A stretch of 49,213 nt of DNA from Octopus bimaculoides (taxonomy: Eukaryota). The DNA is taken from the NCBI RefSeq assembly GCF_001194135.2, contig NC_069003.1, positions 7,063,631 through 7,112,843 of the forward strand, in the 5' to 3' direction. Made by a program: the position numbers and the translations under genes. The notes under the pieces were generated by a model that was not told where the DNA came from, searched no databases, and worked only from the letters and a program-made list of their open reading frames with translations. This document shows positions 3,117 to 44,288 of this stretch, one piece after another (position 1 is the stretch's first letter; each line of letters begins with the position of its first letter).

Positions 3117-3755
3117 GTATATATATNNNNNNNNNNNNNNNNNNNNNNNNNNNNNNNNNNNNNNNNNNNNNNNNNNNNNNNNNNNNNNNNNNNNNNNNNN
3201 NNNNNNNNNNNNNNNNNNNNNNNNNNNNNNNNNNNNNNNNNNNNNNNNNNNNNNNNNNNNNNNNNNNNNNNNNNNNNNNNNNNNNNNNNNNNNNNNNNNN
3301 NNNNNNNNNNNNNNNNNNNNNNNNNNNNNNNNNNNNNNNNNNNNNNNNNNNNNNNNNNNNNNNNNNNNNNNNNNNNNNNNNNNNNNNNNNNNNNNNNNNN
3401 NNNNNNNNNNNNNNNNNNNNNNNNNNNNNNNNNNNNNNNNNNNNNNNNNNNNNNNNNNNNNNNNNNNNNNNNNNNNNNNNNNNNNNNNNNNNNNNNNNNN
3501 NNNNNNNNNNNNNNNNNNNNNNNNNNNNNNNNNNNNNNNNNNNNNNNNNNNNNNNNNNNNNNNNNNNNNNNNNNNNNNNNNNNNNNNNNNNNNNNNNNNN
3601 NNNNNNNNNNNNNNNNNNNNNNNNNNNNNNNNNNNNNNNNNNNNNNNNNNNNNNNNNNNNNNNNNNNNNNNNNNNNNNNNNNNNNNNNNNNNNNNNNNNN
3701 NNNNNNNNNNNNNNNNNNNNNNNNNNNNNNNNNNNNNNNNNNNNNNNNNNNNNNN

Positions 3756-8100: not shown

Positions 8101-11100
8101 TTATAGCAGCGACTCCATCTAAGAATATCTGAAGAAGGAATTGTATTCCGAAATATCATAGGACTATAGATAACTAAATTACAACAGGTATATAGTCCAT
8201 TTTTTGTTTTATAGTGCATTGTTGTACCATTCAAAACTTTTTATTCTTTACTAACAAATAAGATTTTTTTTTTTTTTGCAGGTGGTTTGGATAAACTTAG
8301 AGAGAAGATAAAACAGCAACAGTTGGTATGTAAAGGTATGTTCACCGGATACTGTTGTCTATGGTTCTTAAAAAATTCTACAAAATTTTATACCTCGAAT
8401 GTCAGGTATGTTTTAATGGCAACCAAACACCTATAACGTAGTAAAAAAAAAAAAAATTGTATTCTTAATGCTTGACTGCACCAAGTTCCACTGTCTGTTT
8501 TGATGTGGTTTCTATGGTTGGCTGCTCTTCCTAATATCAACCACTTTATAAAAGTGAAATGGGTGTTTTTATGTGGCACCAGCAATGGCAAGATCTGATT
8601 TAATATGGATTTTATGGATGGGTGCCCTTCCTAATGCCAACTGCTTTACAGAGCAGACTGCTTTCTCTCTCCATCATCACTTAACATCCGTTTTCCATGC
8701 TGGCATGGGTTGGACGGTTTGACAGGGCCAGGCCAGCCGAAGAGCTGCTAGGGCTCCATGTCTGTTTTGGCATGGTTTCTATGGCTGGCTGCCCTTCCTA
8801 ACACCAACCCCTTTACAGAGTGTACTGAGTGCTTTTACGTAGCAGCAGCACCCACGAGCCCACAAGATTAAGAACGTTCAGCTGGAGAGGGATGCAGGGG
8901 ACATGCCTGTATGCAAGGACAACCCTGATTTTGCTTAGCTTGACATGTCTTCTTAAGCACAGCAAACTCCCAGGAGTCTGTCATTCCCCTCTCTGAGACC
9001 CAACATCTGAAGATCCTTTCTTGCCACTACGTCCCACATCTTCCTGGGTCTGTTCCTTCCACAATTAGAGATCAGCACCTTAATTTTTGGGGCTTAAAAT
9101 TTGGAAAAATTGTTTTGTAAGGGATTATAATACTATCCATGCATAAGAAACGTCCATATTTTTTAACCTAATTTTTAACAAAAAAGGGTTCCTTATACCT
9201 GTTAAAATACGGTATATATGTATATATATATGTGTGTGTGTGTGTGTGTGAATATGTGTGTGTGTGTGTGTATACGCTCGTCTTGATATCATGTGGTGGT
9301 TGTAAACGAGCATCACCGTCATACAAGCGGTGTTGTTTGTTTCCAGTCTTCCACGCGAAGCATGTTTGGCCATGGGGAAAATATTACCATTGCTTAGAAA
9401 CAGGTGAGAGAGTTAGTGACCGGAAGGGCATCCAGTTGTTGAAAAACTTGCCTCAATAAATTCCATGTTTAACCAACGCAAGCGTAGAAAAACAAATGTT
9501 AAATGATGACGATGATGATGACATTTTACCTTCTATTGTAGAACACAGCTCCTCAAAAATAACTGAATCATCAGCCCATGTTGAGAAGACTTCTTTGGCA
9601 AGTACTACAAACGAAGGCGATGTGGACATGGTGCCTGAAACAGACTGTCCATCATCCGCCGTTGATTCTTCTGATTCAGTGTGCAGAGCTTCTCAGTCTT
9701 GTGATTATAACAACAATGGACTCGTCTCGACCTATACTTCCAAGAAGACCATCCAGAATAATAAGAATAACCATGCTGTGAAGACACGCAAGATAGCTGC
9801 CAGTGTTTCTACACCATCATACAAAGGTTTTTATCTCACGATAAATTGTTGCTGTTGTTGTCGTTCTTCTTCTTGTTGCTTTTGCGTTGTCATGTGAAGG
9901 TACACGGGTTAATGGTTAAGGTATTTCGTTTGCGATCATAAGGTCTTGAGTCTGAATCCCAGTGGCACATTGTGTTCTTAAGCAAGGCAATTTATTTCAT
10001 GTTGCTCAAGTCCACTGAATGGCCTTCTGAACATTAACCACTTTACAGAGGTACTGGGTGCTTTTTACGTGGCACCATCACCAGTGCATTTTAAACGGCA
10101 CCATCAGCAGTGCTTTTTATGTGGCACCAGCACCGACAGGGCCACCAAGTACCTTACAAGACAAAAACCTCCTCAGCTAGGAGGGAGGAATAGTATCGAG
10201 GGTGTGTGGCTTTGTTCCAGTTGGAAGATTAAAGGTTTAGAGGGACTTCATCATGTATAAATCCTTATACTACATTACATAGTCTTGTATATTATGTTGA
10301 TGATAATTAGTATATTGTAATGTCTTTCTCTCTGTCTGTTTGTGTATAATTATACATGTGCGATTGTGCGTATGCCTCCATTACCAAAAAGTACTACCAC
10401 TAAAACAGGCTGAGTCTCCAGTCAACCATACAAAATCATCAGAAGCCAAACAACCATGTCCACTTGTCTCCTTTCACTTTAACCTCATCATCATAATTTA
10501 TTCATCGTTATATTTTTCTCCTCTTCCTCCTCCTTCTTCAGGGTTTTCAAGACTTAAAGAAAAGAACACAGAAAATGTTAGTGGGGCCAGGGGAAAAGTG
10601 AAACGAACTGATGCAAAGTCTGCGACTACTACTACTGGAAAAGGTAAGTTTATTGTTAATACAATATCTATTTAGCCCTGGGTCAGTCCTGATCCAGGAT
10701 TGACAATCCAGTCTTTTATTCAATCATAGTATATATATATATATATCATCATCATCATCATCATCGTTTAACGTCCGCTTTCCATATATATATATATATA
10801 TTTCATGATCACCATCATTTAACGATGGTGGTGATATATATACTGTGATTGTATAAGCTTATAAAAAAAAAGGTTAGAGCATTGAGCTTATGATTGTGAG
10901 GTTGTGAGTTCAATTCCTGGACCAGGTTGTGTGTTGTGTTCTTGAGCAAGACACTTTATTTCACATTGCTCCGGTTCACTCAGCTGTAGAAATGAGTTGT
11001 GATGTCACTGGTACTGAGCTGTATTGGCCCCTTTGTCTTTCCCTTGGATAACATCGGTGGCATGGAGAGGGGCAGTTGGTATACATTGGCAACTGCTGGT

Positions 11101-14100
11101 TTTCCATAAACAACGTTATGTTTTGAGTTCAAATTCCGCCGCGGTCGACTTTGCCTTTCATCTTTTCTGGGGTGAATAAATTAAGTACCAGTTGCGTACT
11201 GGATCAACCTAATCGACTGGCTCCCTCCCCCAAAATTTCAGGCCTTGTGCTTAGAGTAGAAAAGAATATTCTGTTAAAAGTAATGCTTATTCATTCATAT
11301 TGCTATGAATTAATCATACAATATTTCGTAGCTTTGAGATTTTAATGACGTAACTGTTAATCTTTAGAATGATGTTGTAGTGTTGGTGTGAGAGGCCAGA
11401 TCTAGCCAGTTTAGACCAAAATAAAACAGAATATTTTGGCTGGATGTCGCTCATTTAAATATTAAAGGGTTAATGATGAAACTTTTAATTTATTTATTCT
11501 GTACAGCTGTTACAAGGACTAAAATGAAGAAGGCAGCCAAAACTCAGGAAATACGAGAAAATTCCAAACCAAAGGCTGCCAGAGCAGTCTGTCGGNNNNN
11601 NNNNNNNNNNNNNNNNNNNNNNNNNNNNNNNNNNNNNNNNNNNNNNNNNATACGAATGTCTGAAGGCATTTATCAATGACATTCCACCTAAATGAGCTGA
11701 ATAAAGCTCTTAGTAGGAGACCAAAATGCTAAACATTGCGAGTTCGTGACTATCTAGCCACAACTCAGAATTGTTCAGTTCTTAACTCTTTTATCATTCT
11801 GATTACTCTGTCAAATATCATCATCATCATCATTTAATGTCTGTTTTCCATGCTGGTATGGATGGATTGGATGGTTTGACAGGAGCTGGTGAACTGAACA
11901 GCTGCACCAGGGTTAATATCTATTTTGGGGCATGGTTTCTGCATCTGAATGCCTCTCCTAATACCAAAATGCAGCAAAGACTCATTTTTCCCTCTTAGTG
12001 TTTTGTTTCGTTTTGAAAAATAAAAATTTATTTTATGGTTTGTTTTTGTTTGTTTTGAATTACATAATCTTTTATGGGGACACCAACATCTTTTAAGTGC
12101 CTAGGGCCTTGATGGGTCTTAGTCCGGCCCTGGCAATATTGATAGTTACAGAGAAAGTGGTGGTGAGAGTGATGATGATGGTAACAATGATGGTTACCAT
12201 GACAATGACAACAGTAATGGGGATTATTGTGATTATAACTGTGACATATCAAACCTTGAGCATTCTTCAAGGAGTTCCTCACCATTCATTATTGTATAAT
12301 CTGTTTTTTTTTTTTTTTGGTCACTTTCTGCAGACATTATAACTCCTTCTTCTTGGAAGAAAGGTCATGAAGTGGTGCTACGAATTCTGGGTTCCAAACC
12401 AAAAGTTCAGCCTGCCAAAACGAAGCCAGGTCTTCAAATAGTTGATCTTCAGACCATTCCAGCCAAACTTCCACAGACTGCTCGTGAAATGATAGAAGAT
12501 TTACAGCTTGGAAGGCAAACTGGTACCTCCTTTCATTCTACTATCCGCCCCCCCCTCTATGTGTCTGTCTGTGTGTCCCCACTGTGTTTTGTGATTATTT
12601 CTTTACACTTTTCTTTTGTTTTTCTCCTCCTTTCTTTTGTTTGTTGTTTTCTTCATTTTCCTCTCTTACTCCTTTTAATTCTTATTTTTCTTTTCTTCTT
12701 CTTCCTCTTTATTCTCCTCCTCCTCTGCCTTCTCCTAGTCTGCTTTCTCTTCTTCCTCCTCTTCTGATACTTTTCATTGGATATGAATAATAATTGCTGC
12801 TAACAGGGGCACAAAGTCTTAAGTTTGGGGGCAGGTTAGGGTCAGTTGATGAAATCAACCCCAATAGTTGACTGGTACTTAATTATATCGATCCCCAAAA
12901 GAGGAAAGGCAGAGTTGACCACATTGAGATTTGAACTCAGTGCACTTTGAATAAAGAGCAAAAAACATGGTGCCAACCACTGCATGGTTGCAGTCCAATG
13001 AGCAAAACAAGTAAAGTAAGTAAGATCCCTTACTGGTGTCCTCTCAACCAATATTCTGCTATAGGTGCCACTGGATGACTGCTCTGGTGATGATGTCATT
13101 CTACACTTGCTGACCCATGGTGCTAGCCTTAGCATGCTCAAGGTCGAGGTGCTGCAACTTCGGGTCCTCCTTGACTTTTTTTTGCCCATGGCAGGCTTTT
13201 GAAAGACAAAGGGGTGGACAGTTTGGCACCAACAGATCTGTAATCTACCTCATCTTTGCCAATGACAGTGCCATCTTCGCTTCACTGCCAAGCTATGGAT
13301 ATACAACATTCCCTGCTTCACTCGGCCTTACGGTCTCAAGATCAATGCAGACAAGATAAAAGTTCTAGCAACAAATGGCTTTCTGGCTATCATGCATCTT
13401 GATTAAGTGAAACAAGTAAAAGATAAAAGATATTTTCTGCTGCTGATTTGTTTTTTTTTTCTTTTTTGTTTGTTTGTTTTAATTTTTCAATGATGCATCT
13501 CTGTTTGTTTCTTCACGTATGCCAGACACCTGTATCAACGGTAACCATGAGTACGAGTCGAAAACTTTTGAGAGACCCAAAACCAAAGAAAAGGAGTTTG
13601 ATAAACCTCCTCCGATTTTATCTATCTTAAAAAGGAAACCCAAATTTACAGGTAAGAACATTTACCTTGTCTTCTTTCTTTCCTCATGCAAATTGTAAAA
13701 GTTTTTGCTTAGATTTCAAAACATCCTGATGATGTCTTGAGCTAACTGGATCCTATAAAGGAGCTGTTGTGGTAGCAGACCACGAAACATGGTTGAGATT
13801 TCTTTCCTGTATGTACGTGTGTGTCTTTGTGAGGACAAAAACCATTTTCTTATAATGTAGTGATAATGAAGCTTAACGACCCATAAAGTTATTTCTTGCA
13901 TCAGTTTTGAAAAATTACAATTTCTGTCAAGGTTTGATAAAAAATAAATTCAATCAGTTTTAAGTCTAAAAAACACATTTTTCTGTCTCTTTCGAGTAGT
14001 CCTAGACTCTGAAAAACAACCAAAGGTTCGCCATTATGACCCGGAAGAAGTTCGTAAATTTATTGCAAAGAAGAAAACTGAGAGAGTTCAAAAGGCAAGA

Positions 14101-16886
14101 GAGAACCAAGAAGCTTTGCACAACGAATTTATAAAACGACAAGAAAGGCTCCAAGAGGTCTACCGCAAACAGAAAGAGTCAACTGCATTAATTATGAGAA
14201 AAGAAAATATCTACCCAAGTAAAAAGCCTCTCAAAGAGTCAATGTGTTTTGATATGGTAAGGGTGGTGCCTTTTGTTGTTTTTTTGTTTTTAACTCTTTA
14301 GCATTCAGATGGTGCTGTCAGGTGTGATGAATTAATTATTTGGATTGTTTTAAATTAAGCATGCATTGTCTTATGGCTTTGAGGTTTTGATAATATACGA
14401 TTGTTTATTTTTAGAATAACATTGTAGGGAAGGTGTAAGAGGATGGATCTGGACTTATTTCATTTATTTGATGGTGTGGGCTTTAAGCTGTTGGGATGGC
14501 TATGTTGTTTAGAGATTGTAACTGGAGTTACTTTTGATGGCGGCGGAGGAGGAGGTGGTGGTGGTGGTGGTTGATGGTGTTAATATACTGAACTGGTCAT
14601 TACAGTTATGTGCAAGTGGTTAACCTCGTCAATGTAGTGAACCAAAATAGGTCAATAAATAACCATAAAAACACACACGGGTGTATTAGTTGCACCCCAA
14701 TTTCAGCAATGTGTTTTCATGGAAAAAATGAATGTTTTTGATGCATTGAAACTTATGGGAGGCTTAACTTCACACATACGACCCAAAGTGGGTGTTTTTT
14801 TTTATTTTAATTTTCTTTTTTGAGACATTTTTTGTTTTTGGAAGAAAAGTGCATCTTATATGCCATCAAACACGATAATTAAAATTTCCTGTATAGTGGT
14901 AATGAGATCGTTGGTTAACTGTAGTCGTGACGAAAGGGAGACGACTCTAAAATCGACATTAGCATTCTGTGAATGAGATGAGACATTCATGCGTAGGGTG
15001 ATAATATTTTAATCAGTTTGACAGTGGTGGAAAGTGCAGGAATGTTTCTGCCTTATTTAACCTTATCAGTGAAGCATAGATTTTTTTTTTCCCCAGTGAT
15101 TAACAAATCTAGTGATAGATTATCCTTAGGTAGATGCGTAGCTGTATTTCATCTGCTACGTTCTGTGTTCAAATTCCGCCAAGGTCAACTTTGCCTCGCA
15201 TCCTTTTGGGGTTGATAAATCAAGTATTAGTACTGGGGTCAATGTGATCGACTGTCCGCCTCCCCTCAAAATCCAGGTCTTGTGCCTATGGTAGAAAGGA
15301 TTGTTATAGATTACTTAAATATGAAGTATTACTTGAACTGCTACCTCATCTCCATAGCAGCATATTGCATTCCTTAGTACTCTTTTACTTGTTTCAGTCA
15401 TTTGACTGCGGCCATGCTGGAGCAGCGCCTTTAGTCGAGCAAATCGACCGCAGGACTTATTCTTTGTAAGCCTGGTACTTTTTCTATCGGTCTCTTTTGC
15501 AGAACTGCTAAGTTACAGTGACATAAACACACCAGCATCGGTTGTCAAGCAATGCTAGGGAGACAAACACACACACACACACACACATATATACGACGGG
15601 CTTCTTTCAGTTTTCGTCTACCAAATCCACTCACAAGGCTTTGGTCGACCCCAGGCTATAGTAGAAGACACTTGCCCAAGGTGCCATGCAGTGGGACTGA
15701 ACTCTGAACCATGTGGTTCGTAAACAAGCTACTTACCACACAGCCACTCGATGGATTATTTTTGTTGAATTCTTGATTTCTTCCCTTTTAGTCGATGTTT
15801 GATTCAGAGGACTCCACAGCTGTCAGTGCTAAAGCTAAAGTTAGCGAAAACAGCGAGGATTCAACTGAAGAGACGGAAGAGGGTTCTACAACTTCAAAAA
15901 CTTCTCCGCATGAAAGGTAACATTTATTCTTATTTTTACTGTTTCAGCTGTTTTTGTTGGTCCCTTTTATCCTATTCTCCCCGCCCCCAAATCTCCTTTC
16001 TTGCATCATTGGTGGTCTCCCACTTCCTCTTACTGATTCTCCATGTCTTACTCCCCCTCCACCAAATCCTCCTGCACCTTCCACCCATCCGCACACTCGG
16101 TCCTTCTGCCCAACTCATTTCTACCCACTTCACACCTATTCTCTGCACTGTCAGTCATCCCACCCCCTACTCGCTTCCTCCCTCCTGGTCCCTCTACCCC
16201 ACTCATTCCTACCCTCCTCACACTGTCAAGGGTCCACTCAGACACCTCCCCTCTAAAATGTCAGTAGTTATGTATCTCCTCCGCTACAACAAGAAACCTG
16301 TCCTGCTCTTCTGGTCTTTTCCTTCTTTTACCCCCCTCATCTTCCAGTGTCAAGCCCCCTCTTCAGTGTTTGTAATCTTACGAGCTGCATAACCACCTTA
16401 TCAGTGGTAGTGGGCGTGAAAAGAAGAACCTTGTACATGCTGTAAAGTGGTTGGCGCTAGGAAGAGCATCTGACCATGGAAACCATGACTTCGAACAGAA
16501 GTTTGAGAAAACAAAAATAGAGGTTATTAAGATGGTCACCACCTCCACCCTCAGACTATTTGTTATCTTTAAAAATGTTATTCTTCTGATATTTTCATCT
16601 TAACACACGTACACACAAACACTACAATAATAACAATAACAATAGTAATAATAATAATAATAATAATTATTATTATTATTATTGCTGGCAGAATTGTTAG
16701 CATGCCGGGCAAAATGCTTGGTAGTATTTTGCCCATTGTTACGTTCTGGGTTCAAATTCCACCGAGGTTGACTTTGCCTTTCATCCTTTCGGGGTCAATA
16801 AATTACATACCAGTTAAACACTGGGGTTGATGAAATCGACTAGTCCCCTCCCCTAAATTCCAGGCCTTGTGCCTATAATAGAAAGG

Positions 16887-17964: not shown

Positions 17965-19803
17965 TTGTTGGCACTCCGTCGCTTACGACGTCAAGAGTTC
18001 CAGTTGATCCGATCAACAGAACAGCCTGCTCGTGAAATTAACGTGCAAGTGGCTGAGCACTCCACAGACACGTGTACCCTTAACGTAGTNNNNNNNNNNC
18101 CGACCCATTGAATTACAGGCACAACAGAAACAGGAAGTAAGCGTGAGAGAAAGTTGTGGTGGAAGAGTACAGCAGGGTCCGCCACCCACCCCCTGCCGGG
18201 AGCCTCGTGGAGCTTTAGCTGTTTTCGCTCAATAAACACTCACAACGCCTAGTCTGGGAATTGAAACTGCGATCCTATGACCGCGAGTCCGCTGCCCTAA
18301 CCAATGGGCCATTGCGCCTCCACGCACACACACACACACACACACACACATACATATGATAAAGAAATTTCTTTCTCCCTTATTTGTTATTCTCATTTAT
18401 GAATATATTCTAAATGTATTTCAGTATGTCTGACCAGCTGAGTCAAGACAGTGATGCTGCCTACAACAAATGTTCATGCCACTTACCAAGGACCCATTCT
18501 CTGCAAAACCCTGCTGCTGACCGAAAATCTTCCGACTATTTCTATCACAGTCTTCTCTCAACAAACAAACCTGTAAATCCACTGGTACCTGGACCCATCT
18601 CTCGTACTCAATTAGGTAATACAATAGAAGAAGATTTATGTTATGTTATGTTATAGAGCATTTGGTTACATACATAGATATACTTATGTTGTGATCATTG
18701 ATTGATTATTGTGTTTTAGATTGCTAAAGAAAATACCATGTGGGATTTAGTTAATTACTTTTAGACTCATCTGCCATTACCATGTGGTATGTGGCCAACC
18801 AGATCCTCACAGAACACGACATGGTATTCATGATGCAAGTAGAAAAAATCAAGTAACTTGACAAGACGGTTTTTACCTGGATGAGGAAATATCTGACAGA
18901 GACAGGGGACTGACTGGGACATTGCTGGGAGGGTTGCCCAGGACACCCTGAGTAAATACCAACAAATGGTTGATGCAGTGATGTGCTGCAATGGTGTATG
19001 CCCCTCCCCATACCCTTCAGATTCACGGTTCAAATTCAGCCAGGGTCAAGTTTGTCTCTGATCCCTGGTGTTGTTAAACAAGTCACTGGAATATACATGA
19101 CTCAGTCAACTGATTTCTCATCTACAAATTTGTAGACTTGTGCTATTGTTCACCCTCCTCTTTTCCTCTCCTCAGGGGCAGACCCAAGGGAGTACCTGAG
19201 GCACACATGCCCCTCACTTCAAGAAAAGAAGTGTGCCCTTCTAAATAATGTTATTACGCCCTTTTCTCCTGGAATTGTATTCCCTTCTGACCTTGTGCCC
19301 TCCTTTCAAAAAATGCCTGCTCCTACTGGTAAGGAGCCCTATTGATCCACTGCTTCAACCCGCAAATTAACAGTCGATCAGAGTTGAGCTGGTGGCTCCT
19401 ATGAAAACATCAGGGCAGCTGCAACCACCACCATAATATACACTGCCACCACCACCACCACCACATAGCTATACATTGCTACAAGCAACGATCAGAGAGT
19501 TGTCTATACTGATAGTTGGTAGCCTGCTGCTGCATCACATCATCCGACAGTTGGTGAGTTGCATACAGCAACGATTGGATGTTTGTTTACATCAATGCTT
19601 GGAGAGTTGGTTACACCAATATTTGGAGAGTGACTGCTAGTGCCACTAACATAACACTGAGGAATTTGAATGGGTTAATGGAACCTGTAAAACAAGGCAT
19701 TTCCCAGCCGGTTTTATTTCTGAGGATGGACCTTTGTGCCAGAAATATAAAGGTTTTGTGAAACTTTCCGCTTTCAGAAGCTTTCTTATTTTCTCTTCCT
19801 TCT

Positions 19804-20636: not shown

Positions 20637-23600
20637 GAGTGAGAGAGCAGTGCATGCCATCAAAGTGACACTGGGGTAAAATATATGAAGCCCAATATAC
20701 CCATCAGGATTACTTGTCTGATAAGGGTACACCAGGCACATGCATCACAACCATATACGCGTGACATAATGATCTCATATCAAAAGGTCCCTGAATAAGG
20801 GTTGTTTAAGGATGATGAATGAAACACCCATGTTTCCAGAGGTGAATTATCCAAACCCAAAAGAATTCCTCTCAACACATGGCTATGATGCTCCCCTACT
20901 ACTTCTGCTCACGATCAGAGATGCACATATCGTCAGCCACCAAGGGACATGCTCAACTAGTTACGGTCAAGCAACTGACAAGCAAATCTGTGGTATTGAG
21001 CAGAATATTTGCTGTAGCCCATCTTTTATACCAAGACAAAGCAATGTCCATGATTGCACTGCCAATCAGTTAAGATCAGAAGACATGAGAGCCACTGCCT
21101 GGTACTGCATCAGGGCATTTATTATTATTACCTCTGCCTGGAACCATGTGGTTGAGGAACAAGCTTCTTACCACACAATTCTTCTTCCTCCTCCTCCCCC
21201 TTCCTCCTTCTTCGTCTTCATCCTTTAACATCTGTTATCCATGCTGGCATGGGTTTGACAGGAGCTGGCAAGGTAGACGACTGCACAGGGTTTCTCTACC
21301 TCAAATAGTTTCATTTCTTACCTGTAATTCTTTCTTCTCTTTCAAGGAGTTCAAAATATTCAGCAAAAAGCAGCGGAAATATTTGACAAGAAGGAAAAAG
21401 ATGCGGCTACGTGCATTCAGGCAGTTTACCGCGGCTACACTGTACGCAAGAACCTCCATTGGCAGAGACTGACTGGCCAAACAGATTTCAGTGAGAAGGT
21501 AAGTTCTAATCACTACAGCCATTGCCTTTCGACTTCTGTGTTTGTTCAGTTTTAATCTTCCTGGATTATAAGCATCATCGGGTTGGACAGAACTTGTTGA
21601 GACAGATTTTCTATGGTCAGATGCTCGTCCTGTCATCAACCCTCATCTATTTCCAAGCAAGCCTTTTCGGTGACACCAGTATCTGTGCTTTTAATGTGGC
21701 ACCAGTGTTGAGAATGTGGTAAGCAGTGATTAGAACGTGGTCTGATTCTGGAAATCTTGCAACTTGGCCGAACAGTCTGTGCCAATACTCGCAAATCATT
21801 CAAGACATACAGCTTGGCACTAATTCCTAATGTTTTTTTCAGTGGGATTCAAACAGTGAAAGTAAATTTTATTTATCTTTTACTTGCTTCAGTCATTAGA
21901 TTTTGACCTTGAAGAATTTTAGTTGAATAAACTAACCCCAGTACTTATCTTTTTGTATAGCTTGGTACTTATTCTATTGGTCTCTTTTGCCGAACCACTA
22001 AGTTACGGGTACATAAACACATACACAAGCAGTGGTGGGGGACAAACACACACACACACACACACATATGATGAGCTTCTTTTAGTTTCTATTTACTAAA
22101 TCCACTCTCAAGACTTTGAATTGCTCAAGGTTCTGTGCAGTGCGACTGAATCTGGAACCATGTGATTGGGAAGAAAACTTCTTACCGCAAGCCATGCGTA
22201 AAACTCATTATTGTGAAACATTAATTACTGCCAGGCAATTGAATACTTCCCTTATTTTGTGCCATTCCAAAACTGACCTTATTCTCAAACGTTACAACTG
22301 ATATATATCTCTTTCAGGCTAACCTCTATCTTGAAAGAAACTCAGTTTCTTCAAGCGATGAGGCACAGAAAACTCCACCCAGATCTAAAGTAAAGGTAAA
22401 TTTTTTAAAATTTTGTATTTATGTTGTTTGTTGTTTATTTGTTTTTATGAAGTTTTATACATGAAGCATTGTTACTGCTTATGAGAAGGCCATATCAGTA
22501 TACCTTGAGTTTTTTTTAAAAAGCCCTAACAATAAAATTCTTTCAGTATTTAGCAAATCAAAGCACAGCACAATTATTTCTGCATAAGCTTTGTTTTCAC
22601 ATTGTAGTGACTCCTTTTTAATTTCAAATTCACCTGCAGTTTTCCTTACCTGGACTAGAATTGAACCAGAATTATGTATTAAGATTATTATGTTAACCCT
22701 TGCACTCGTCATCGTTTTAATGTCCACTTTTCCATGCTCCCATGGAATTCGTTGAGGCAGATTTTCTACGGCTGGATGCCTTTCCTCTCACTAACTCTCA
22801 CCTGTTTTCCAAGCAAAGTATTTTCTCATAGCTAGACATGTTTTTCATGGAAGACTAGAAACAAACAACCCTTTCTGCCCATCCTGCTCTTAACCATTAC
22901 TTGTTTCCAAGCAAGCTTTTAACTGGCTGTGTTTTCCATGAAAAACTGGAAACAAGCAGCATAGATTATATGATGGTAATGATGCTCATTCATGACTGTC
23001 AAAGGGCATAGGAACTCAGGTGAATCAATGACCATCCAATACAGTCAAAGGTAGATGGGGCTCACTAGACGTAGTGAAGACAATCCAGCTAAGAGAAGAA
23101 GACCTCTGAAATAAAAACCATTCTGTGAGAACTTGCAACCAACTGATACTATTTTGCAAAGAAAATACGACATGTGAAGATGTTATAGTCTTGTTCATAG
23201 ACAGCAAATGTCTATGTATGTACTTATATATGTCTGTCTGTACTATTTCTTTTATTTTCAGGGAAAACTATGTTTTGAAAATATATCAGCTTCATCAGAT
23301 GAGATGACAACCCCTCCTCAAACTACAGATTTTCCGAATCCAACATCAAGATTTAAAGTAAATATAATAATTTTATATCCAGACTTCTTCATTAAATGTC
23401 TTCTACATAAACAGGGAGCATGATCATTGTGCTTGTAAGGAGAACTTTATTTATATGTATATATATATATATATATCATCATCATCATCATCATAGAACG
23501 TCCGTGTTCCATGCATGGGTGGAACAGTACCACAAGAGTCGACCAGGCTGAAGCCTACACCAGTCTTCTGTGACTGTTTTGGCAATGTATATATATATTC

Positions 23601-25845
23601 TTTTATTTGTTTCAGTCGTTTGAGTGCAGCCATGCTGGGGCATCCATGAACAAAACTATAACATCTTCACATGTCGTATTTTCTTTGCAATTTATATATA
23701 TATATATATATATATATAAATTGCTTGCGTTGTGCCAAAATTTGAAACCATTATTAATCAACTCCTTTTTTTTTTTTCTTTTTTTTCTATAAAGAATCTG
23801 CATTGTGATTATACTGAATTATTGCGGGGGAATGAAGTGGATGAACACATTTCGGATAATTCTCAAGAAATGGACACATCATGGCTGTGTAAACCTGCTT
23901 CCTCCAGATATCCATGGAAGAAGAATGATATACCTCCTGATAAATACAGTGTTGTCAACATATTCACATCAAAATATAGGACATGCAACAACACAGGTGA
24001 AATTATCATTTATTATTATTATTATTATTATAACTAATAATATTGTTAGGGTGGCAAGTTGGCAAGAATGTTAACATGTCAGACAAAATGCTTAGCAGCA
24101 TTTTGTCTGTCTTCACGTTCTAGGTTCAACTTTGAGGTCGACTTTGCTTTTCATCCTTTGGGGGTGTCTATAAATTAAGTACCAGTTACACACTGGGGTC
24201 AGTGTAATCAACTAGTCCCCTCCCTCTGAAATTTTCAGGCCTTGTGTCTTTAGTAGAAAGGATTATCATCATCATCAACAACAGCAGCAACAACAACAAA
24301 GTGGCAAGCTTTGTTAGCATGCCAGGTGAAATGCTTTGCTGCTACGTTCTGAGTTCAAATTCTGCCAAGGTCAACTTTGCTTTTCTTCCTTTCAGGGTTG
24401 ATAAATTACGTACCAGTTACACACTGGGGTCAGTGTAATTGACTAGTCCCCTGCCCCCAAATTTCAGGCCTTGTACCCATAGTAGAAAAGATTATTATTA
24501 TTATTACTGTTATTAGTGTGGATAGCTGGCAGGAATGTTAACACACCAGGCAAAAATGTTTAGCGACATTTTGTCCATCTTCACTTTTTGGGTTCAAATT
24601 CCATCGAGACCAACTTAACCTGTCGTCCTTATGGGGTCTATAAATTAAGTACCAGTTGAAGACTGGGGTTGATGTAATCGACTTACCAACTCCCCCAAAG
24701 TTGCTGGCTCTGTGCCCAAATATGAAATCCTCATCATCATCATCATCATCATTATTACCTCTCATTTAGCTAATCATGGGGGTGTACAGATTCCCCATAC
24801 AACATTTACGTTCTGAGCACTAGTGTAGCACTAGTGGGTGGTGGTAGGAGTGGTCTGCCTCAGGTGGCACTTTTGGGTCTGCAGTAGCCAATATGTGTTT
24901 TTTGGGGGGCGGAGGTCCGGGGGCAACAAACGGAAGGGCCGCACTGGGCAGCACACACTTTGGCTATGCTAATGGTTCTGAGTTGAAATTCCATCGACAT
25001 CATCTTTGCCTGTCATCCTTCCAGAGTTGATGATATAAGCACCTAGGTCAGATGAATCGGAACCCTCGTCATCAAAGCTGACAGAGTGTCATTGTCCGTC
25101 GTCATTATCGTCGTCCTCATTATATATATATATATTATGACACATACTTTTAAAAATACATTACAGAAACAGAAGATTCAGCCCAACAGGAAACACCAAG
25201 TTTGGAGAATTCTCAGCCGAAGCCATTAATTTCTTCTTTGTTACATTTGAACACTAACGACTTAAATGTACCTCCACCACAACACCACCGTCCAACCAGC
25301 CAGCTGCTGGAAAATATTCACAGTGGACTGCCACGTTTAAAGGCCCCTACAGCATTCAGCGTGAACCCATCCGTGAGCTTGGACACGTTTGAGAGGAATA
25401 ACAGTTGCAAGCGTGAGATGTATGATGTAATGGCAACCGCTTCGCTGATTAGTTTACCTTCTCAAAAGATTTCGTTAGTCGGTGGTGAAAGTAAAGAAAT
25501 CCACTCTGATAAGTTACCTGAAGAAATTCACACGTCTTCCAGAATAAAATCGTAAGTCTAATTCTATTAATGCCCCCACCACCACCACCACCACCACCAC
25601 NNNNNNNNNNNNNNNNNNNNNNCCTTTGTTAATCTTTTTACTTGTTTCAGCCACTTGACTGTGGCCATGCTGGAGCACCGCCTTAAAGGTTTTTTTTTAG
25701 TTGAAGAAATCGACCACCAGGACTTATTTTTTATAAGCCTGATACTTATTCTATTGTTCTCTTTATGCCAAACTGCTAAGTTACAGGGACGAAAACACAC
25801 CGACACTTGTTGTCAAGCAATGGTGGCAGGGTCAAACATAAATAG

Positions 25846-25879
<34 letters not shown>

Positions 25880-28800
25880 GATGGGGTTTCTTTCAGTTTC
25901 TATCTACCAAATCCACTCACAAGGCTTTGGTTAGCCTGAGGCTGTAGTAAAAGACACTTGCTCAAGGTGTCACACAGTGGGACTGAACATGGAACCACAT
26001 GATTGGGGAGCAAGCTTGTTACCACACAGCCACACCTGTGCCTATGTTTTTTTCATCATCATTGCCATTTAATGTCTGTTTCCCATGCTGGCATGGGTTG
26101 CACGGTTTGACTGAGGACTGGCAAGCCAGAGAGCTGCACCAGGCTCTAGTTGTCTGTTTTGGCATGGTCTCTATGGCTGGATGCCCTTCCTAATGACAAC
26201 CACTTTACAGAGAGTACTGGGTGCTTTTTTTTTTGTGACACCGGCACAGGTGCTTTTTACTTGGCACCAGCACTGGTGGTTTTTATCTGGAGCCAGTATG
26301 GGTGTTTTATACATGACATAAGCACATGGAACCAACACAGGTGCTTCTTATGTGACACCAGCACAGGTGATTTTACATGACAGGAGCTTGGGTGCTTTTT
26401 TTTACATGCTACCAGCACAGGTGTTTTTGCTATGGCACCAGCATAGATGCTTTTGTTGTGGCACCAGCACCAATGGGGTCACTAAGTAGCTTGCAAGACA
26501 GATCTTTCAGCTGAGAGAGGGAGTGGAAGTGAGGGAGGTGGCTGTGTTCCAGGTGAGAGGTTAGGCATTTTCAATTTCCACAATTTTTTTATTTTCACTC
26601 CACCCTAGACTACACAATCTATATACCTGCACCCACAAACATGTGTCCAGTCCTTGATGTTGTCGAGCCAGGATTTCCTCTGCTTTTTCCTATGCCTGCC
26701 CTCAACTGTGTCCTGAAGAATGGTTTTGGGCAGAGAGTTGTGGCAGGGTACATGACCGTACCAGACAAGCTTCTCTCTTTTTACTTGCATAAGGAGTGGT
26801 TCCTGTCTGCCAGTGTATCTGTTCTCTTGCTGCTTAACAAAGCTGCTCATTTTGTGCCCTGTGTAGAGGATGTGTAATAGCCCTCTAAAGCATTTGTACT
26901 TAAATGCCTTGATTCTTCACTCCATGTCAGTTTCCAACAAGAGGATTGAGCAAAATATATGAGACTCTTCCATGATTTAGCTTGGAAAATGGTCTTGAGA
27001 TAATTGGCTGTGGTGCTGTAATGGTAATGAGTCTAATTTGCATTTCCTTGCCAAACCTAATTCCATTTTAGCGTTTTTTTATAAACAAAATACATTACTG
27101 TTATGCATGTATGCGCAACACTGCTATTGTGTGTGTGTGTGTAGTGTATATTGCTTTTGTGTGTGTGACATGCGCTACTGTTCCTCTGTGTGTGTGTATG
27201 TGTGTGGTAACACATAACGCTGTGTAACCCTAATTTTTTCTGTCTGCAGCTCGTATTCCGTCAATCCAGTCATCCAAACCAATGGAGACTGCTATGGTTT
27301 GCAGGATTTACATTCATCATCATCATGGTAAGTTTATTGTCAATTTCTACTCTAGATTCTTACCTAAAATAGTTTTTTTTTTTAATAAAATAAACTGAGT
27401 CATGAAATATTTTTTAATGAATATAATTAACTTTATATGTTTCTTTATTTATTTTTATTTCGAAATATCATATCAGACTATGGATGATTAAATTACAACA
27501 GCTATTATAGTCCATTGTTTGTATTATAGTGTATTGTTGTGTCATTCAAAACATTTTATTCTTCATATATATATGGCACCAGCACAGGTGCTTTTAATAT
27601 GGCACCAGCACAGGTGCTTTTAATATGGCTCCAGCACAGGTGCTTTTAATATGGCACCAGCACAGGTGCTTTTAATATGGCACCAGCACAGGTGCTTTTA
27701 ATATGGCTCCAGCACAGGTGCTTTTATTATGGCACCAGCACAGGTGCTTTTAATATGGCNNNNNNNNNNNNNNNNNNNNNNNNNNNNNNNNNNNNNNNNN
27801 NNNNNNNNNNNNNNNNNNNNNNNNNNNNNNNNNNNNNNNNNNNNNNNNNNNNNNNNNNNNNNNNNNNNNNNNNNNNNNNNNNNNNNNNNNNNNNNNNNNN
27901 NNNNNNNNNNNNNNNNNNNNNNNNNNNNNNNNNNNNNNNNNNNNNNNNNNNNNNNNNNNNNNNNNNNNNNNNNNNNNNNNNNNNNNNNNNNNNNNNNNNN
28001 NNNNNNNNNNNNNNNNNNNNNNNNNNNNNNNNNNNNNNNNNNNNNNNNNNNNNNNNNNNNNNNNNNNNNNNNNNNNNNNNNNNNNNNNNNNNNNNNNNNN
28101 NNNNNNNNNNNNNNNNNNNNNNNNNNNNNNNNNNNNNNNNNNNNNNNNNNNNNNNNNNNNNNNNNNNNNNNNNNNNNNNNNNNNNNNNNNNNNNNNNNNN
28201 NNNNNNNNNNNNNNNNNNNNNNNNNNNNNNNNNNNNNNNNNNNNNNNNNNNNNNNNNNNNNNNNNNNNNNNNNNNNNNNNNNNNNNNNNNNNNNNNNNNN
28301 NNNNNNNNNNNNNNNNNNNNNNNNNNNNNNNNNNNNNNNNNNNNNNNNNNNNNNNNNNNNNNNNNNNNNNNNNNNNNNNNNNNNNNNNNNNNNNNNNNNN
28401 NNNNNNNNNNNNNNNNNNNNNNNNNNNNNNNNNNNNNNNNNNNNNNNNNNNNNNNNNNNNNNNNNNNNNNNNTATATGGCACCAGCACAGGTGCTTTTAA
28501 TATGGCACCAGCACAGGTGCTTTTAATATGGCTCCAGCACAGGTGCTTTTAATATGGCACCAGCACAGTTGCTTGTAATATGGCTCCAGCACAGGTGCTT
28601 TTAATATGGCTCCAGCACAGGTGCTTTTAATATGGCTCCAGCACAGGTGCCTTTAATATGGCTCCAGCACAGGTGCCTTTAATATGGCTCCAGTACAGGT
28701 GCTTGTGGGAGCAACACTTCATTGCAGGCCTCGTCTGGGTTAGTATTTGTTATGGGCCAAAATATTTTCCGGCTCCAAAGAGGAAACTCAGACTGAAATC

Positions 28801-29889: not shown

Positions 29890-32317
29890 ATGCCAAGAAA
29901 TACCAGTGCCATGAAATACCATCTCCAAAATCACTTCAGTATCAAGTCATCCATGCCAAACCATCACCATCCACACAACCACACTCAGTCGCCCCGTTCC
30001 ACCCTTAACGCATACATGGATATATATCTGGGTAGAAACAATTTGGATTGTAAAGTAACGACAGTATTGTCAACATGGGTGTTTCATTCCTCGAATCTTT
30101 GAATCTTCGTTTCCTTTACCAGTTTCCTGCCATTGGTGGCTACTCCACAAAAGAAGGTGACCCTATTGAGAGCCCTATGAAAAAGTATTCCCCTGCACAG
30201 CTTCCAATGAAGCTACGTGCTGAGCTGTATAACTGGGAACAGACAGTGGAGTCCATATCGTTAGCTCAACAGGAAACGTTTTCGTTGGGCAGAATATTTC
30301 AGGTAAGACAGTTTTATTTTTACTTCGTTTTTGTATCTGGTTTGCAAGATTCTTTATGTGAATTTGTGTGTTGAAACAAATTTTGTTGTGTCTAGGGAGA
30401 GTCATTATGCCAATATTATTAACACATGCCTTCCAGCACTTGTGCTGGTGGCACGTTAGAAAATCATTCGAGCGAGGTCATTGCCAGTGCCGCTGGACTG
30501 GCTCCCATGCAGGTGGCACGTAAAAAACACCGTTTTGAGCGTGGCCGTTACCAGTACCATGTGACTGGCCCTCGTGCCGGTGGCACGTAAAAAGCACCCA
30601 CTACACTCTCAGAGTGATTGGCATTAGGAAGGGCATCCAGCTGTAGAAACTCTGCCAAATCAGATTGGAGCCTGGTGCAGCCTTCTGGCTTGCTAGTCCT
30701 CCGTCAAATCGTCCAACCCATGCTAGCATGGAGAGCGGATGTTATGCGATGATGATGATGATGATGATGATGATGCACCAGTTCAATTCCATTTATTTAT
30801 TAAAGATCCAATGTTTTTGTTTGCCAAAGCTCATTCATTGCTTCTTGCAGCAGTCTCAGTGACAAGCAAAAACAAAACAATTGGATATTGAATAAATGAG
30901 GAGTGGAATTGAACCAGTGTATGTGTGTTAATTATATTGGTGCAATGACTCTCCCTCGGCACAACAAAGTTTTATTTTTATTTTTTGTTATCAACCCTTT
31001 AAAAGTGTTTCAATTACTCTGCCAAATGTGAAACTTAATTATTCATGCTGTTTTGATTTAATCATACATTATCTCATAGCTTTGGGATTTCAATGTTATT
31101 GCCTATTTTTAGAATGATATTGTAGGGTAGGTGAGAGAAACCAGATCTGGCCAGTTTGAACATAAAACATATTTGGGCCAGATATGGTTGGCTTAAATGT
31201 ATGTGATAGTCGTAAACAAGTGTCACTGTCATACAAGCAGTGTCCTTCATTTCCAATTTCTGTGAAAAGATGTCTAGTCAAAGGAAAAATGTTACCTTAC
31301 TTGGAAACAGGTGAGGGTTCATGACAGAAGGGGCATCTGGCTGTTTAAAAAACCTGCCTCAACAAATTCTAACTCCTGTAAAGTGCAAAAAAGATCGGAC
31401 GTTAAAATGATATATATGTATATATACACACACACATAGACATATACATGTACACATATATACATATACAAGTGTGTGTGAGTGTGTTTATGTCTCCGTA
31501 TGTTGATATTGTGTGAGAGTTGTAAATGAACATCACTGTCACACAAGCAATTTCATTTGTTTCCGATTTTCAGTGAAGAACATGTCTGGCTATGGGGAAA
31601 AAAAATTACTTCGTTTGGAAACAGGTAAGGGTTGGTGAATGGAAGAGCATCCAGTCATAGATAATCTGCCTTGACAAATTCTCCCCTTTTGACCCATGCA
31701 AACATGGAAAAGTGAACATTAAATTAAAATGATGATGATGTTGATGATGATGATGATGTTACGTTATGTTTATAATTTCAGACTCAGAGTCAAAATCCTG
31801 AACCGAATTTGCATTACCTGGAGCAAATGCGACGTGCAATGGCTATGTTGGACAATAATACTACAAGTCGTGTCCCGCCAGCAGAACCGGTCATCTCATC
31901 TCCAGAGCATAGTGACCATTCCGGTGTACTGAAGAGCATTATGGCTGAAGACAAACAACCAGCATCTCAAAAGTCTTTCTCACATTATCATTCCCTCAAC
32001 AGCACAGTTACATCTCAGGTAAATGGTATTTCTCGGAGTGGTTGGTGTTAGGAAGGGCATCCAGCTGTAGAAACTTTGCCAGATCAGATTGGGGCCTGGT
32101 GCAGCCTTCTGGCTCACAAGTCCTCAGTCAAACCATCCAACCCATGCCTGGTTTGAGGCCCAACCTTCCGAGTTCTTTTACAGGTCTTAAAAAAGCTGAA
32201 GGACCACTACAGTAAGTGTGTGAATCTGAGAGGGGTATATGTTAAATAAAATCATAATTAACTGATCCTCCTGTATTTTCTTTTACCCAAAGCCAGGAAC
32301 TTTTCAGCACTCCCTCG

Positions 32318-32348
<31 letters not shown>

Positions 32349-35300
32349 ATNNNNNNNNNNNNNNNNNNNNNNNNNNNNNNNNNNNNNNNNNNNNNNNNNN
32401 NNNNNNNNNNNNNNNNNNNNNNNNNNNNNNNNNNNNNNNNNNNNNNNNNNNNNNNNNNNNNNNNNNNNNNNNNNNNNNNNNNNNNNNNNNNNNNNNNNNN
32501 NNNNNNNNNNNNNNNNNNNNNNNNNNNNNNNNNNNNNNNNNNNNNNNNNNNNNNNNNNNNNNNNNNNNNNNNNNNNNNNNNNNNNNNNNNNNNNNNNNNN
32601 NNNNNNNNNNNNNNNNNNNNNNNNNNNNNNNNNNNNNNNNNNNNNNNNNNNNNNNNNNNNNNNNNNNNNNNNNNNNNNNNNNNNNNNNNNNNNNNNNNNN
32701 NNNNNNNNNNNNNNNNNNNNNNNNNNNNNNNNNNNNNNNNNNNNNNNNNNNNNNNNNNNNNNNNNNNNNNNNNNNNNNNNNNNNNNNNNNNNNNNNNNNN
32801 NNNNNNNNNNNNNNNNNNNNNNNNNNNNNNNNNNNNNNNNNNNNNNNNNNNNNNNNNNNNNNNNNNNNNNNNNNNNNNNNNNNNNNNNNNNNNNNNNNNN
32901 NNNNNNNNNNNNNNNNNNNNNNNNNNNNNNNNNNNNNNNNNNNNNNNNNNNNNNNNNNNNNNNNNNNNNNNNNNNNNNNNNNNNNNNNNNNNNNNNNNNN
33001 NNNNNNNNNNNNACCAGGCTCCAATCTGATCTGGCAGAGTTTCTACAGCCGGATGCCCTTCCTAATGCCAACCACTCCGAGAGTGTAGTGGGTGCTTTTA
33101 TGTGCCACCGACACGAGGGCCAGACAGGCGGTACTGGCGACGGCCACGCTCAAATGGTGTTTTTTATGTACCACCTGCACAGGAGCCAGTCCAGTAGCAC
33201 AGGCAATGACCTCACTTGAATGTTCTTTCACGTGCCAGTAAGGCGACGCTGGGAACAATCATGCTCGAATGGTGCTTTTTATGTGCCACCGGCACGGAAG
33301 CCAGTCAGTGGCCCTGGCAACGACCACGCTCGGATGGTGCTTTAACGTTCCATGTGATTGCAAGGGAAACTTCTGATCACACAGCCATACTTGTGCTTAT
33401 AATTACAACAAGTAAAACCAACACACACACACACACACACACATGCATGCACGTGCGTGCGTGCCTGACATAAGCAGGACTTGAGTTTGTAGTGATTTAC
33501 TCCACCAGAAATATTCTCGTGTTTATTGCCCATAAATGAAATGTCTTCTTCTCATTTTTTTCATCCATTAAATTCTCAGCCATTCCCACCGAGCAAGTTC
33601 ACAGAGGAGCAGCAGCAATTTCATAAAGACACTCAGTGATGCAAAGAACCATTCTGACAGTTCTTCTGGTACAGTAACAGAAGATATTTCCGGTAAGTGT
33701 CGCTCCAGTTTATCAGTAGCATTTCAATTTGAACACATGCCTTTCACCATCACCATCATCCTCCTCATCATGATCCATTTTTCTGCAGATTTTTCACATT
33801 CAGTCTCCATGCGCCCCCACAAATCGTCCACTTTCAGTATTTATATTTTCACAGATTTTTCCACATCCAATATCCATGTCTTCACAGACCTTCCACATTC
33901 ACTCTTCATTTCCACATTTAGTACCCATGTTTCCACAGACCCCCTACATTCAGTGTCCATGTATCACTACCATGTAGATGACACTTACACATGTTTCATA
34001 CAATCTGTCTTTTACACACCCATTGCCAACAAAATGTAATTATTTTCCAGATTTCTTTCACTCCGGTCTTACTGTTGTGCCAACCATTTCAGTAGAGTCC
34101 AATTTCCATTAGAGTCACTTCTATAATGGAGGACTCTAACAAACTGAACAGTTTAGGGACCTGTATTTCATACTTTTTTTATCTAGAAAAATCTTTTCTG
34201 TTGTTGTTCAATTTGAACTTGCAGCCAGTTCCGGTACTGAAGCCAGTTCCACGTCTCAGCCATCGAAATATCTCACTAAGACCAGTTCCTCATCAAAACG
34301 GAGAGTTCTACATAACAAGGAGAATCTACCGTCAAAGAAGGTAAATATGTTAAAGAATAAAAATTTTTAATGATTCGTGTTTAGCCTCCGACCACCACCA
34401 CCAGGTGGGCCCAAATTGACCAGGTCAAAAGTGATCAAAGGCATTCCAGTTGTGACCATTCCATTTTTTTTTTTTCCAAATATAATATCTATAAATTTAC
34501 AATGTTCATAGTGTTATTCCTTTTTAAGACATTAGTGTGATTTGAACACTAGGATTGATGTAATCAATTTACCCAGCCCCCGCCCCCAATTTCTGGCCTT
34601 GCGCCAAAATTTGAAATTAGTATTTAATCTTATCCTTGATTTCAAATGACACTAAATCCACTTAGCCTTTCCATTCCTCCAGGGTCAATGTGATAAAATG
34701 AGTACAATTCTGTTAATAAGGAATTGACTAAGAATGGCCGCCAATTAAGGGGCAGCAGTAACAGAATAATTGCCTTGCAATATTTAGTTTCATACCAAGA
34801 TTAACTTTGGTTTTCATCTCTCCAGGATTATTAAAATAATATATTCGGGTCTTCTCTGTAATCTCCTGTAAATGTTTTACTTTTCAATCATTACCAGAAA
34901 TATATATGGGTCTTCTCTGTAATTTCCTTAAAATGTTTTGTCTTTTAACAGTTGACCATGTTGCTAAGTAAGGAATCTAGTGTGTAAGCGGTTGTGTCTG
35001 GTAAGCTCCTTCATCACACAGCCAGTTTCACAACTTGATGTTTCCTTTCCAGTTGAAACAATTCCACCTCACTGATGTTGCTAATGACTTTGTTTTATTC
35101 TTTGTCTTAAGCAACATGTTGATGTAATACAATTCTATATTTCCAAGATGAGGAACTTTATTCTGTATGCTTTTTATATTAGCCAGACCAACTGGTGTCC
35201 TCATCTGATTGTTGCTCTCATTATATTTCAGCTGTTGTACACTTTTTCAGATGTCTTGTGTTGAACTCGGTTGTTGATTTGGAATTTCAAACCTAACCCT

Positions 35301-41174: not shown

Positions 41175-41571
41175 TGTCATATATATATATAAATGTAAAA
41201 CACACATTAAATGATGATCATAATAGATCTTATAAAGAAAAGCATATATNNNNNNNNNNNNNNNNNNNNNNNNNNNNNNNNNNNNNNNNNNNNNNNNNNN
41301 NNNNNNNNNNNNNNNNNNNNNNNNNNNNNNNNNNNNNNNNNNNNNNNNNNNNNNNNNNNNNNNNNNNNNNNNNNNNNNNNNNNNNNNNNNNNNNNNNNNN
41401 NNNNNNNNNNNNNNNNNNNNNNNNNNNNNNNNNNNNNNNNNNNNNNNNNNNNNNNNNNNNNNNNNNNNNNNNNNNNNNNNNNNNNNNNNNNNNNNNNNNN
41501 NNNNNNNNNNNNNNNNNNNNNNNNNNNNNNNNNNNNNNNNNNNNNNNNNNNNNNNNNNNNNNNNNNNNNNN

Positions 41572-44101: not shown

Positions 44102-44288
44102 CATTATTATTTGTATTTTGCCCATCACTACGTTTTTTGAGTTCAAACCCTGCCAAGGTTGACTTTGCCTTTCATCCTTTCTGGGATCGATAAATTAAGT
44201 ACCAGTGAAACACTGGGGTCGATGTAATCGACTAGTCCCCTCCTCTAAAAGTTCCCCTAATCCTTCAGTAGAAAGGATAATTATTATT

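Follow-up and report, generated by a model that had tools for sequence, protein, structure and literature searches.

Chimeric retrocopies made by long interspersed nuclear elements (LINEs), such as the U6/L1 and mRNA/L1 chimeras, consist of the 3' part of a 5'-truncated retroelement fused, with no filler, to a copy of another sequence (10.1101/2025.02.02.635956; PMC11702581; PMC2104539), and template-switching reverse transcription has been described in experimental L1 insertions, as have local inverted duplications (PMC11702581). Here we describe a locus of similar anatomy in a 49,213-nucleotide stretch of the Octopus bimaculoides genome (contig NC_069003.1, positions 7,063,631 to 7,112,843 of the forward strand; hereafter the window, in whose own coordinates positions are given), where a 96-nt coding exon of a gene resembling that for centrosome-associated protein 350 (CEP350) lies between two nearly complementary intronic arms, one of them fused to the tail of a short interspersed nuclear element (SINE). 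The mechanisms involved are of known kinds: a chimeric or template-switched retro-insertion, and an exon-bracketing intronic inverted repeat. As in the LINE chimeras, the copied part has the orientation of its source transcript and there is microhomology at the 5' junction; where those chimeras have a target-site duplication around the whole, this composite has a candidate one. The locus differs from them in that the retroelement part is a 45-nt cephalopod SINE tail rather than L1, that poly(A) is lacking, and that the captured piece is the host gene's own intron, about 400 nt from the integration site. It also differs from dispersed chimeric pseudogenes in its outcome, a local inverted duplication, for which a DNA fold-back may also have been the template.

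Three other described systems bear comparison. Inverted pairs of Alu elements that flank exons share with this locus the complementary introns around a short exon, the short downstream intron, and the stable predicted duplex (PMC2533698, PMC13019027, PMC13019944, PMC4201285). Those pairs, however, are made of two transposable-element copies of about 300 bp, whereas the arms here are 48 bp long, nearly perfect, and composed of unique host intron sequence that would have been duplicated in a single event. Twin priming, which gives 5'-inverted L1 insertions, likewise leaves an inverted segment at the 5' end of a retro-insertion, and the microhomology TTGC found here could have acted as a primer; but the inverted part in twin priming is the retroelement's own RNA, whereas here it is local host sequence, which twin priming could have copied only from an antisense transcript or from the minus DNA strand. 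Finally, fold-back templated insertions at double-strand breaks place inverted nearby sequence at a break (PMC11724301). The insertions reported there mostly measure about 5-34 bp, whereas the inverted copy here measures 45-48 nt, has its source about 400 nt away, and is attached to a retroelement tail.

The host gene was found by an exhaustive HMMER scan with the open reading frame at 13948-14298 as query, which matched a 1418-residue protein (92% identity, E = 1.5e-42) named by its sources as centrosome-associated protein 350 isoform X2 of Octopus sinensis; isoforms X1 and X3 and an Octopus vulgaris fragment fall in the same protein cluster. When O. sinensis isoform X1 was compared with the window by tblastn, 26 colinear plus-strand matches were obtained, covering residues 47-1537. 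Judged by these matches, the window is most of an octopod CEP350-like gene on the plus strand. Arthropod and fish CEP350 gave weak matches only (E about 1e-5 to 1e-4), and nine putative exon peptides scanned against Pfam held no domain. Three runs of a word-indexed protein search with putative exons gave no matches and missed the O. sinensis ortholog; the queries were 80-93% identical to O. sinensis CEP350, and negatives of that search do not amount to absence. Metagenome scans with a 24-mer from the arm and with the back-translated exon-3 peptide also gave no match.

The original prediction placed a 96-nt, phase 0-0 exon between the arms, and its boundaries proved exact. The exon is bounded by AG/G and AAA/GTAAAT (the slash marks the splice boundary) and is open in frame 0 only. 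Its product, GKLCFENISASSDEMTTPPQTTDFPNPTSRFK, agrees at 31 of 32 positions with residues 844-875 of O. sinensis isoform X1, whose exon has the same boundaries, and at the nucleotide level the two species are 96.8% identical (92/95 aligned positions). At the end of the upstream exon the O. sinensis isoforms read ...ANRYLERNSVSSCDEAQTPPPRSKLK/GKLCF..., and across the enclosed exon all three annotated isoforms read ...PPPRSKLK/GKLCFENISASSDEMTTPPKTTDFPNPTSRFK/NLHYDYTELL...; they vary solely at the C-terminus, and none of the three skips the 96-nt exon.

The inverted repeat itself is also as predicted: the 45-mer at 23154-23198 is the reverse complement of 23646-23690 with a single mismatch, and none of 100 dinucleotide-preserving shuffles produced a matching inverted copy. 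Gap-free extension lengthens the arms to 23154-23201 and 23643-23690 (48 nt, two mismatches, 96% complementary, spacing 441 nt). Both mismatches form A:C oppositions, C23190 with A23654 and A23199 with C23645. Arm 1 precedes the 96-nt exon, and arm 2 follows it at a distance of 285 nt (Table 1). No further copy of the 45-mer occurs elsewhere in the window, and there is no sign of it as a dispersed repeat across 137 kb of repeat-rich sequence (the 49-kb window and an 88-kb O. sinensis locus). The sequence is local within this span, and we rejected for it the reading of the 45-mer as a common dispersed repeat, which the original prediction had named as a refuting outcome.

Arm-to-arm homology stops within the first half of a small palindrome at 23196-23216, which sits in a 23-nt segment (TCATAGACAGCAAATGTCTATGT) missing from O. 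sinensis; the last 7 bases of the extended 48-nt arm (TCATAGA) fall in the same segment. The palindrome may record a second, small fold-back-type change at this spot.

Arm 2 is fused to the tail of a SINE and followed by (TA)n, as originally described. Compared with at least eight window copies of a dispersed SINE, bases 23595/8-23642 correspond to its last 45-48 nt, with an identity of about 87-89%; the full element is roughly 398 nt long and has at least ten copies in the window. Forty copies from the window and the O. sinensis locus keep the same end (reference positions 386-398), while their starts range from 1 to 371. Scattered starts with a constant end make up a 5'-truncation series, which identifies the constant end as the 3' end, the starting point of reverse transcription. 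ARAGORN and Rfam made no tRNA or other family call in the SINE head or the window, and a literature search for the SINE tail sequence gave no result.

The junction between SINE and arm is tight. SINE homology ends at 23642 and arm homology begins at 23643-23646, with no filler between them; the assignment is ambiguous in 23643-23645, where comparison with a related copy at 44287-44327 leaves the TC at 23643-4 assignable to either part. Read 5' to 3', the minus strand carries the copy of plus-strand 23154-23201, then the last 45 nt of the SINE, then the TA run. Followed along the SINE's own strand, arm 2 therefore has the sense of the plus-strand CEP350-like gene, which is the orientation expected of template switching and not of twin priming under the rule that separates the two (10.1101/2025.02.02.635956). 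A 17-nt direct repeat with one mismatch flanks the SINE-plus-arm composite exactly, and no direct repeat was found around the SINE piece alone; other SINE copies have direct repeats of about 8-10 nt. The first 4 nt of the right copy of the repeat (GCAA) are also the last 4 nt of arm 2, giving a 4-nt microhomology at the 5' junction. Such a composite is rare: one of the 40 SINE copies with an intact 3' end carries a unique local copy at its truncation point, and a census of the remaining 39 found none with a unique local copy at the 5' end.

Table 1. Features in and around the exon-bracketing inverted repeat, in window coordinates.
Feature	Position	Strand	Description or basis
Upstream coding exon (ANLYLERNSVSSSDEAQKTPPRSKVK)	22318-22395	+	CEP350-like, about residues 818-843 of isoform X1; tblastn
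Arm 1 (source copy)	23154-23201	+	Ancestral intron sequence, 60 nt upstream of the exon's 3' splice site
Small 8-bp perfect palindrome, CATAGACA-GCAAA-TGTCTATG	23196-23216	none	Read from sequence
Enclosed 96-nt coding exon, phase 0-0	23262-23357	+	CEP350-like residues 844-875
TA-rich run beside older repeat insertion	23449-23476	none	Common to O. sinensis
Older second dispersed repeat, fragment; (CAT)n end, then AACGTCCG...GGCA	23477-23588	-	First 38 nt shared with O. sinensis
Candidate target-site duplication, left copy (GCAATGTATATATATAT)	23582-23598	none	Direct-repeat search
SINE, 3'-terminal 45 nt	23598-23642	-	Reference positions 351-398; 5'-truncated, antisense to the gene
Arm 2	23643-23690	-	On the minus strand, a copy of plus-strand 23154-23201; secure core 23646-23690
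Candidate target-site duplication, right copy (GCAATTTATATATATAT)	23687-23703	none	Direct-repeat search
(TA)n tract, remainder of TA-rich target	23691-23718	none	(TA)13 at 23693-23718
Third SINE-like repeat, tail	23719-23767	+	Common to O. sinensis
Downstream coding exon (NLHCDYTELLRGNEV...KYRTCNNT)	23795-23996	+	About residues 876-942 of isoform X1

The original prediction had also proposed a comparison with the orthologous intron of a related octopod, for which we used the 88-kb O. sinensis locus (L001). Arm 1 is present there at the orthologous site, on the plus strand only (L001 47097-47124 and 47184-47209), split by an 87-nt tandem expansion of a ATGACATGTGAAGAT...TATAG motif. Arm 2 and the SINE tail are absent throughout the locus, in which no inverted match to the arm exceeds 13 nt. 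With arm 1 at the orthologous site and arm 2 absent, arm 1 is the ancestral source. At the mismatch at 23190, O. sinensis has T, as does arm 2, and it was therefore arm 1 that changed after copying. Around the arms, window positions 23358-23514 align with L001 47350-47505 (91% identity) and 23718-23759 with L001 48075-48116 (93% identity); the 569 nt that O. sinensis has between these blocks bear no relation to the 203 nt of the window and include, at L001 47486-47967 on the minus strand, a fragment of a Tc1/mariner-type transposase (Pfam DDE_3, E = 3e-10). This fragment takes the place in the O. sinensis intron that in the window belongs to arm 2, the SINE tail, and the remaining part of the older repeat. 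Colinear intron sequence diverges by about 6-11% between the two species, and two differences in the 48 nt of the arms would fit an origin no earlier than the species split.

About three copies of ATGACATGTGAAGAT(GT)TATAG occupy L001 47097-47209 and are specific to O. sinensis. Arm 1 sequence is apparently unstable and unconstrained in that species.

We consider it probable, if well short of certain, that a single SINE retroposition with a template switch onto local sequence created the inverted repeat, whose duplex we would expect to affect RNA processing. The retroposition and local template switch put forward in the original prediction are well supported by the direct fusion to the SINE, the sense orientation of the copy, the direct repeat around the composite only, the ancestral state of arm 1, and the 45-mer not being a dispersed repeat in the 137 kb; identifying the gene and comparing the two species both strengthen this reading. 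In the sequence of steps that we propose, target-primed reverse transcription at a TA-rich site in the intron downstream of the 96-nt exon would have placed a SINE in antisense orientation to the gene, the plus-strand 3' end at the nick priming synthesis on the SINE RNA. After 45 nt of SINE RNA had been copied, synthesis would have switched template and copied about 44-48 nt of the plus strand (23201 back to 23154), about 400 nt upstream, in the preceding intron. The template may have been nascent CEP350 pre-mRNA or a resected plus DNA strand folded back; we lean slightly towards nascent pre-mRNA. The new end would then have joined across the break by the 4-nt GCAA/TTGC microhomology, leaving the 17-nt target-site duplication. 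One such event would yield a 48-bp inverted repeat, nearly perfect, whose arms lie in the two introns on either side of the exon.

Several points weigh against this account of the origin, or limit it. RNA and DNA templates would give an identical product, which sequence alone cannot separate. The repeat is called a SINE for its size, its copy number, the pattern of its truncations, and motifs that by eye resemble promoter boxes. Microhomology at the SINE/arm junction is at most 2 nt. Since (TA)n makes up 11 of the 17 nt of the flanking repeat, it is the GCAAT prefix that gives this repeat its significance, and the target-site duplication is only a candidate. Remodelling by the DDE_3 fragment in O. 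sinensis means that no clean empty site survives, and with neither an empty site nor an outgroup a gain in the window's lineage is inseparable from a loss in O. sinensis. The divergence of the arms (2/48) is also not significantly different from that of the introns.

The RNA stem looping out the exon, which the original prediction had proposed, is strongly predicted by thermodynamics. The arm duplex has a predicted energy of -66.8 kcal/mol and pairing probabilities of about 1.0 in a 1.2-kb context, and the predicted fold of the 591-nt region has z = -6.6. Within the 441-nt loop of the predicted stem sit the exon and both of its splice sites, the 3' site 60 nt away from arm 1 and the 5' site 285 nt away from arm 2. 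Directly 3' of arm 2, the (TA)n tract and its flanks make up a 38-nt perfect palindrome, GCAATTT(AT)nAAATTGC (23687-23724), which is predicted to form a hairpin of its own, stacked beside the long stem.

Three consequences of such a duplex in the pre-mRNA can be graded by analogy. From general ADAR biology, a near-perfect 48-bp duplex is an expected editing substrate, and the arms are likely to be edited provided that expression of the gene coincides with abundant ADAR; such editing would be expected above all at the A:C oppositions, at A23654 and A23199. Some in-frame skipping of the 96-nt exon is possible, and the exon would be expected to shift somewhat in that direction: inverted Alu pairs around exons are enriched at skippable exons, notably short exons with short downstream introns (PMC13019027), and in minigene experiments an inverted intronic Alu pair moved an exon from constitutive to alternative (PMC2533698). 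Back-splicing is unlikely, the least likely of the proposed outcomes, and little or no circular RNA would be expected; in minigenes, inverted repeats of about 30-40 nt were enough to drive circularisation, but exons no longer than 400 nt formed circles poorly or failed to do so (PMC4201285).

The chances are nearly even, though slightly short of it, that the inverted repeat is real and yet neutral for RNA processing, with a stem that forms late, is unwound or is tolerated, a constitutive exon, and a repeat that is a decaying by-product of retroposition. The exon is present in all three annotated isoforms of O. sinensis, a species without the stem, and since the exon is conserved, strong skipping would probably be selected against. 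Arm 1 is unconstrained in O. sinensis, with the 87-nt tandem expansion inside it, which also argues against a strong effect. Transcription of arm 2 follows that of arm 1 by about 490 nt, and because the 441-nt loop is transcribed before arm 2, exon definition may finish before the stem forms. The same pre-mRNA has many other inverted pairs of dispersed repeats, some of them around other exons: an 87-nt, 95% inverted pair at 30590-30676 and 33013-33099, for example, brackets the CEP350 exon at 31776-32066 (residues 1206-1302), its second arm adjoining an assembly gap. An exon-bracketing stem is therefore not unusual in this gene. Against neutrality stand the unusual predicted strength of this stem and its nearness to the exon, the statistical link between exon-flanking inverted Alu pairs and skipping together with the minigene shift to alternative splicing (PMC13019027; PMC2533698), and the ADAR editing that is at least expected of such a duplex.

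A second alternative retains the SINE insertion and divides the history into two independent events, a 5'-truncated SINE first and a later break repair (fold-back, polymerase-theta-type templated insertion, or replication template switching) that put the inverted copy at its end. Templated inverted insertions at breaks are well documented (PMC11724301), the TA-rich palindrome (23687-23724) might act as a fragile site, and the small palindrome at 23196-23216 suggests that fold-back-type changes occur here. The copy starts 0-3 nt from the truncation point of the SINE, however, and the 17-nt repeat surrounds the composite and not the SINE piece; with this exact junction and a repeat flanking only the composite, two independent events are the less parsimonious history. 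The copy, taken from a source about 400 nt away, is also longer than most of the fold-back insertions compared above. We regard this history as unlikely.

Single retroposition with template switching can also be put in a bolder form, which we regard as unlikely: that the SINE reverse transcript jumped specifically to nascent host pre-mRNA and made an exon-bracketing double-stranded RNA switch, such that the exon is now alternatively skipped or heavily ADAR-edited in this lineage, unlike in O. sinensis and O. vulgaris. If this were true, a single event would have given rise to splicing or editing regulation specific to the lineage, and SINE activity in cephalopods would have a route for seeding ADAR substrates from unique host sequence.

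An artefact of sequencing or of a draft assembly with gaps is very improbable, and we rejected it. The region is rich in simple repeats, and the window has nine runs of N totalling 2,634 (849-1031, 3127-3755, 7839-7877, 11596-11649, 18090-18099, 25601-25622, 27760-28472, 32351-33012, and 41250-41571). There is no gap within 1.9 kb of the inverted repeat, however, the nearest being those at 18090-18099 and 25601-25622; the arms are non-identical, differing at one or two positions, and at 23190 it is arm 2, not arm 1, that has kept the ancestral base seen in O. sinensis; and the anatomy of the junction is coherent with retroposition. The weakest alternative, that the 537-bp segment is a DNA transposon resembling a miniature inverted-repeat transposable element (MITE) with the arms as terminal inverted repeats and the exon as cargo, is effectively refuted: the arms have a superficial likeness to terminal inverted repeats of 45-48 nt spaced by about 440 nt, and the window has a genuine fold-back element elsewhere, but no target-site duplication abuts the arms (flanks ...GATACTATT (...ACTATT) and TTTATATAT... 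(TTTATA...)), no other copy occurs in the 137 kb of window and O. sinensis locus, and what the arms enclose is a conserved CEP350 exon together with orthologous intron sequence, which O. sinensis has without arm 2; unrelated SINE fragments also lie between the arms.

The locus is a clean molecular fossil, one which suggests that retroposition in cephalopods can make inverted duplicates of host sequence lying nearby. In this way a coding exon would, in one step, have come to be surrounded by a near-perfect double-stranded RNA element, without two transposable-element copies. O. sinensis, which has the exon and arm 1 and lacks arm 2, forms with the window's species a natural pair with and without the stem; the pair bears on skipping by short perfect stems in vivo, on ADAR editing of such stems in cephalopods, and on the choice between RNA and DNA templates. 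If the stem is without effect, the locus is an ordinary SINE by-product in a repeat-rich intron.

The 96-nt exon and its two neighbours have a common acidic, serine-rich motif, E-x-[IS]-S-x-S-[SQ]-[DE]-E-...-T (exons 22318-22395, 23262-23357, and 23795-23996). By shuffle tests of peptide likeness, the 96-nt exon resembles both the upstream exon (p = 0.002) and the downstream exon (p = 0.01), and the test of the upstream against the downstream exon gave p = 0.74. This pattern suggests an old exon duplication in a disordered part of CEP350. Some O. sinensis exons had no match in the window (e.g. residues 601-641 and 1287-1331), and some of these may fall in assembly gaps.

Elsewhere in the gene, a further inverted pair joins 32031-32100 with 33013-33082. 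The fold-back (MITE-like) element lies at 7994-8257 and has 103-nt arms (93% complementary) around a 58-nt loop; its arm recurs at 27477-27563, marking a dispersed element, in an intron of the same CEP350-like gene. SINE copies with intact 3' ends are antisense to the gene in nine of ten cases in the window and in 19 of 30 in the O. sinensis locus, counts that are non-independent in that some insertions are orthologous. An antisense excess is usual for intronic retroposons.

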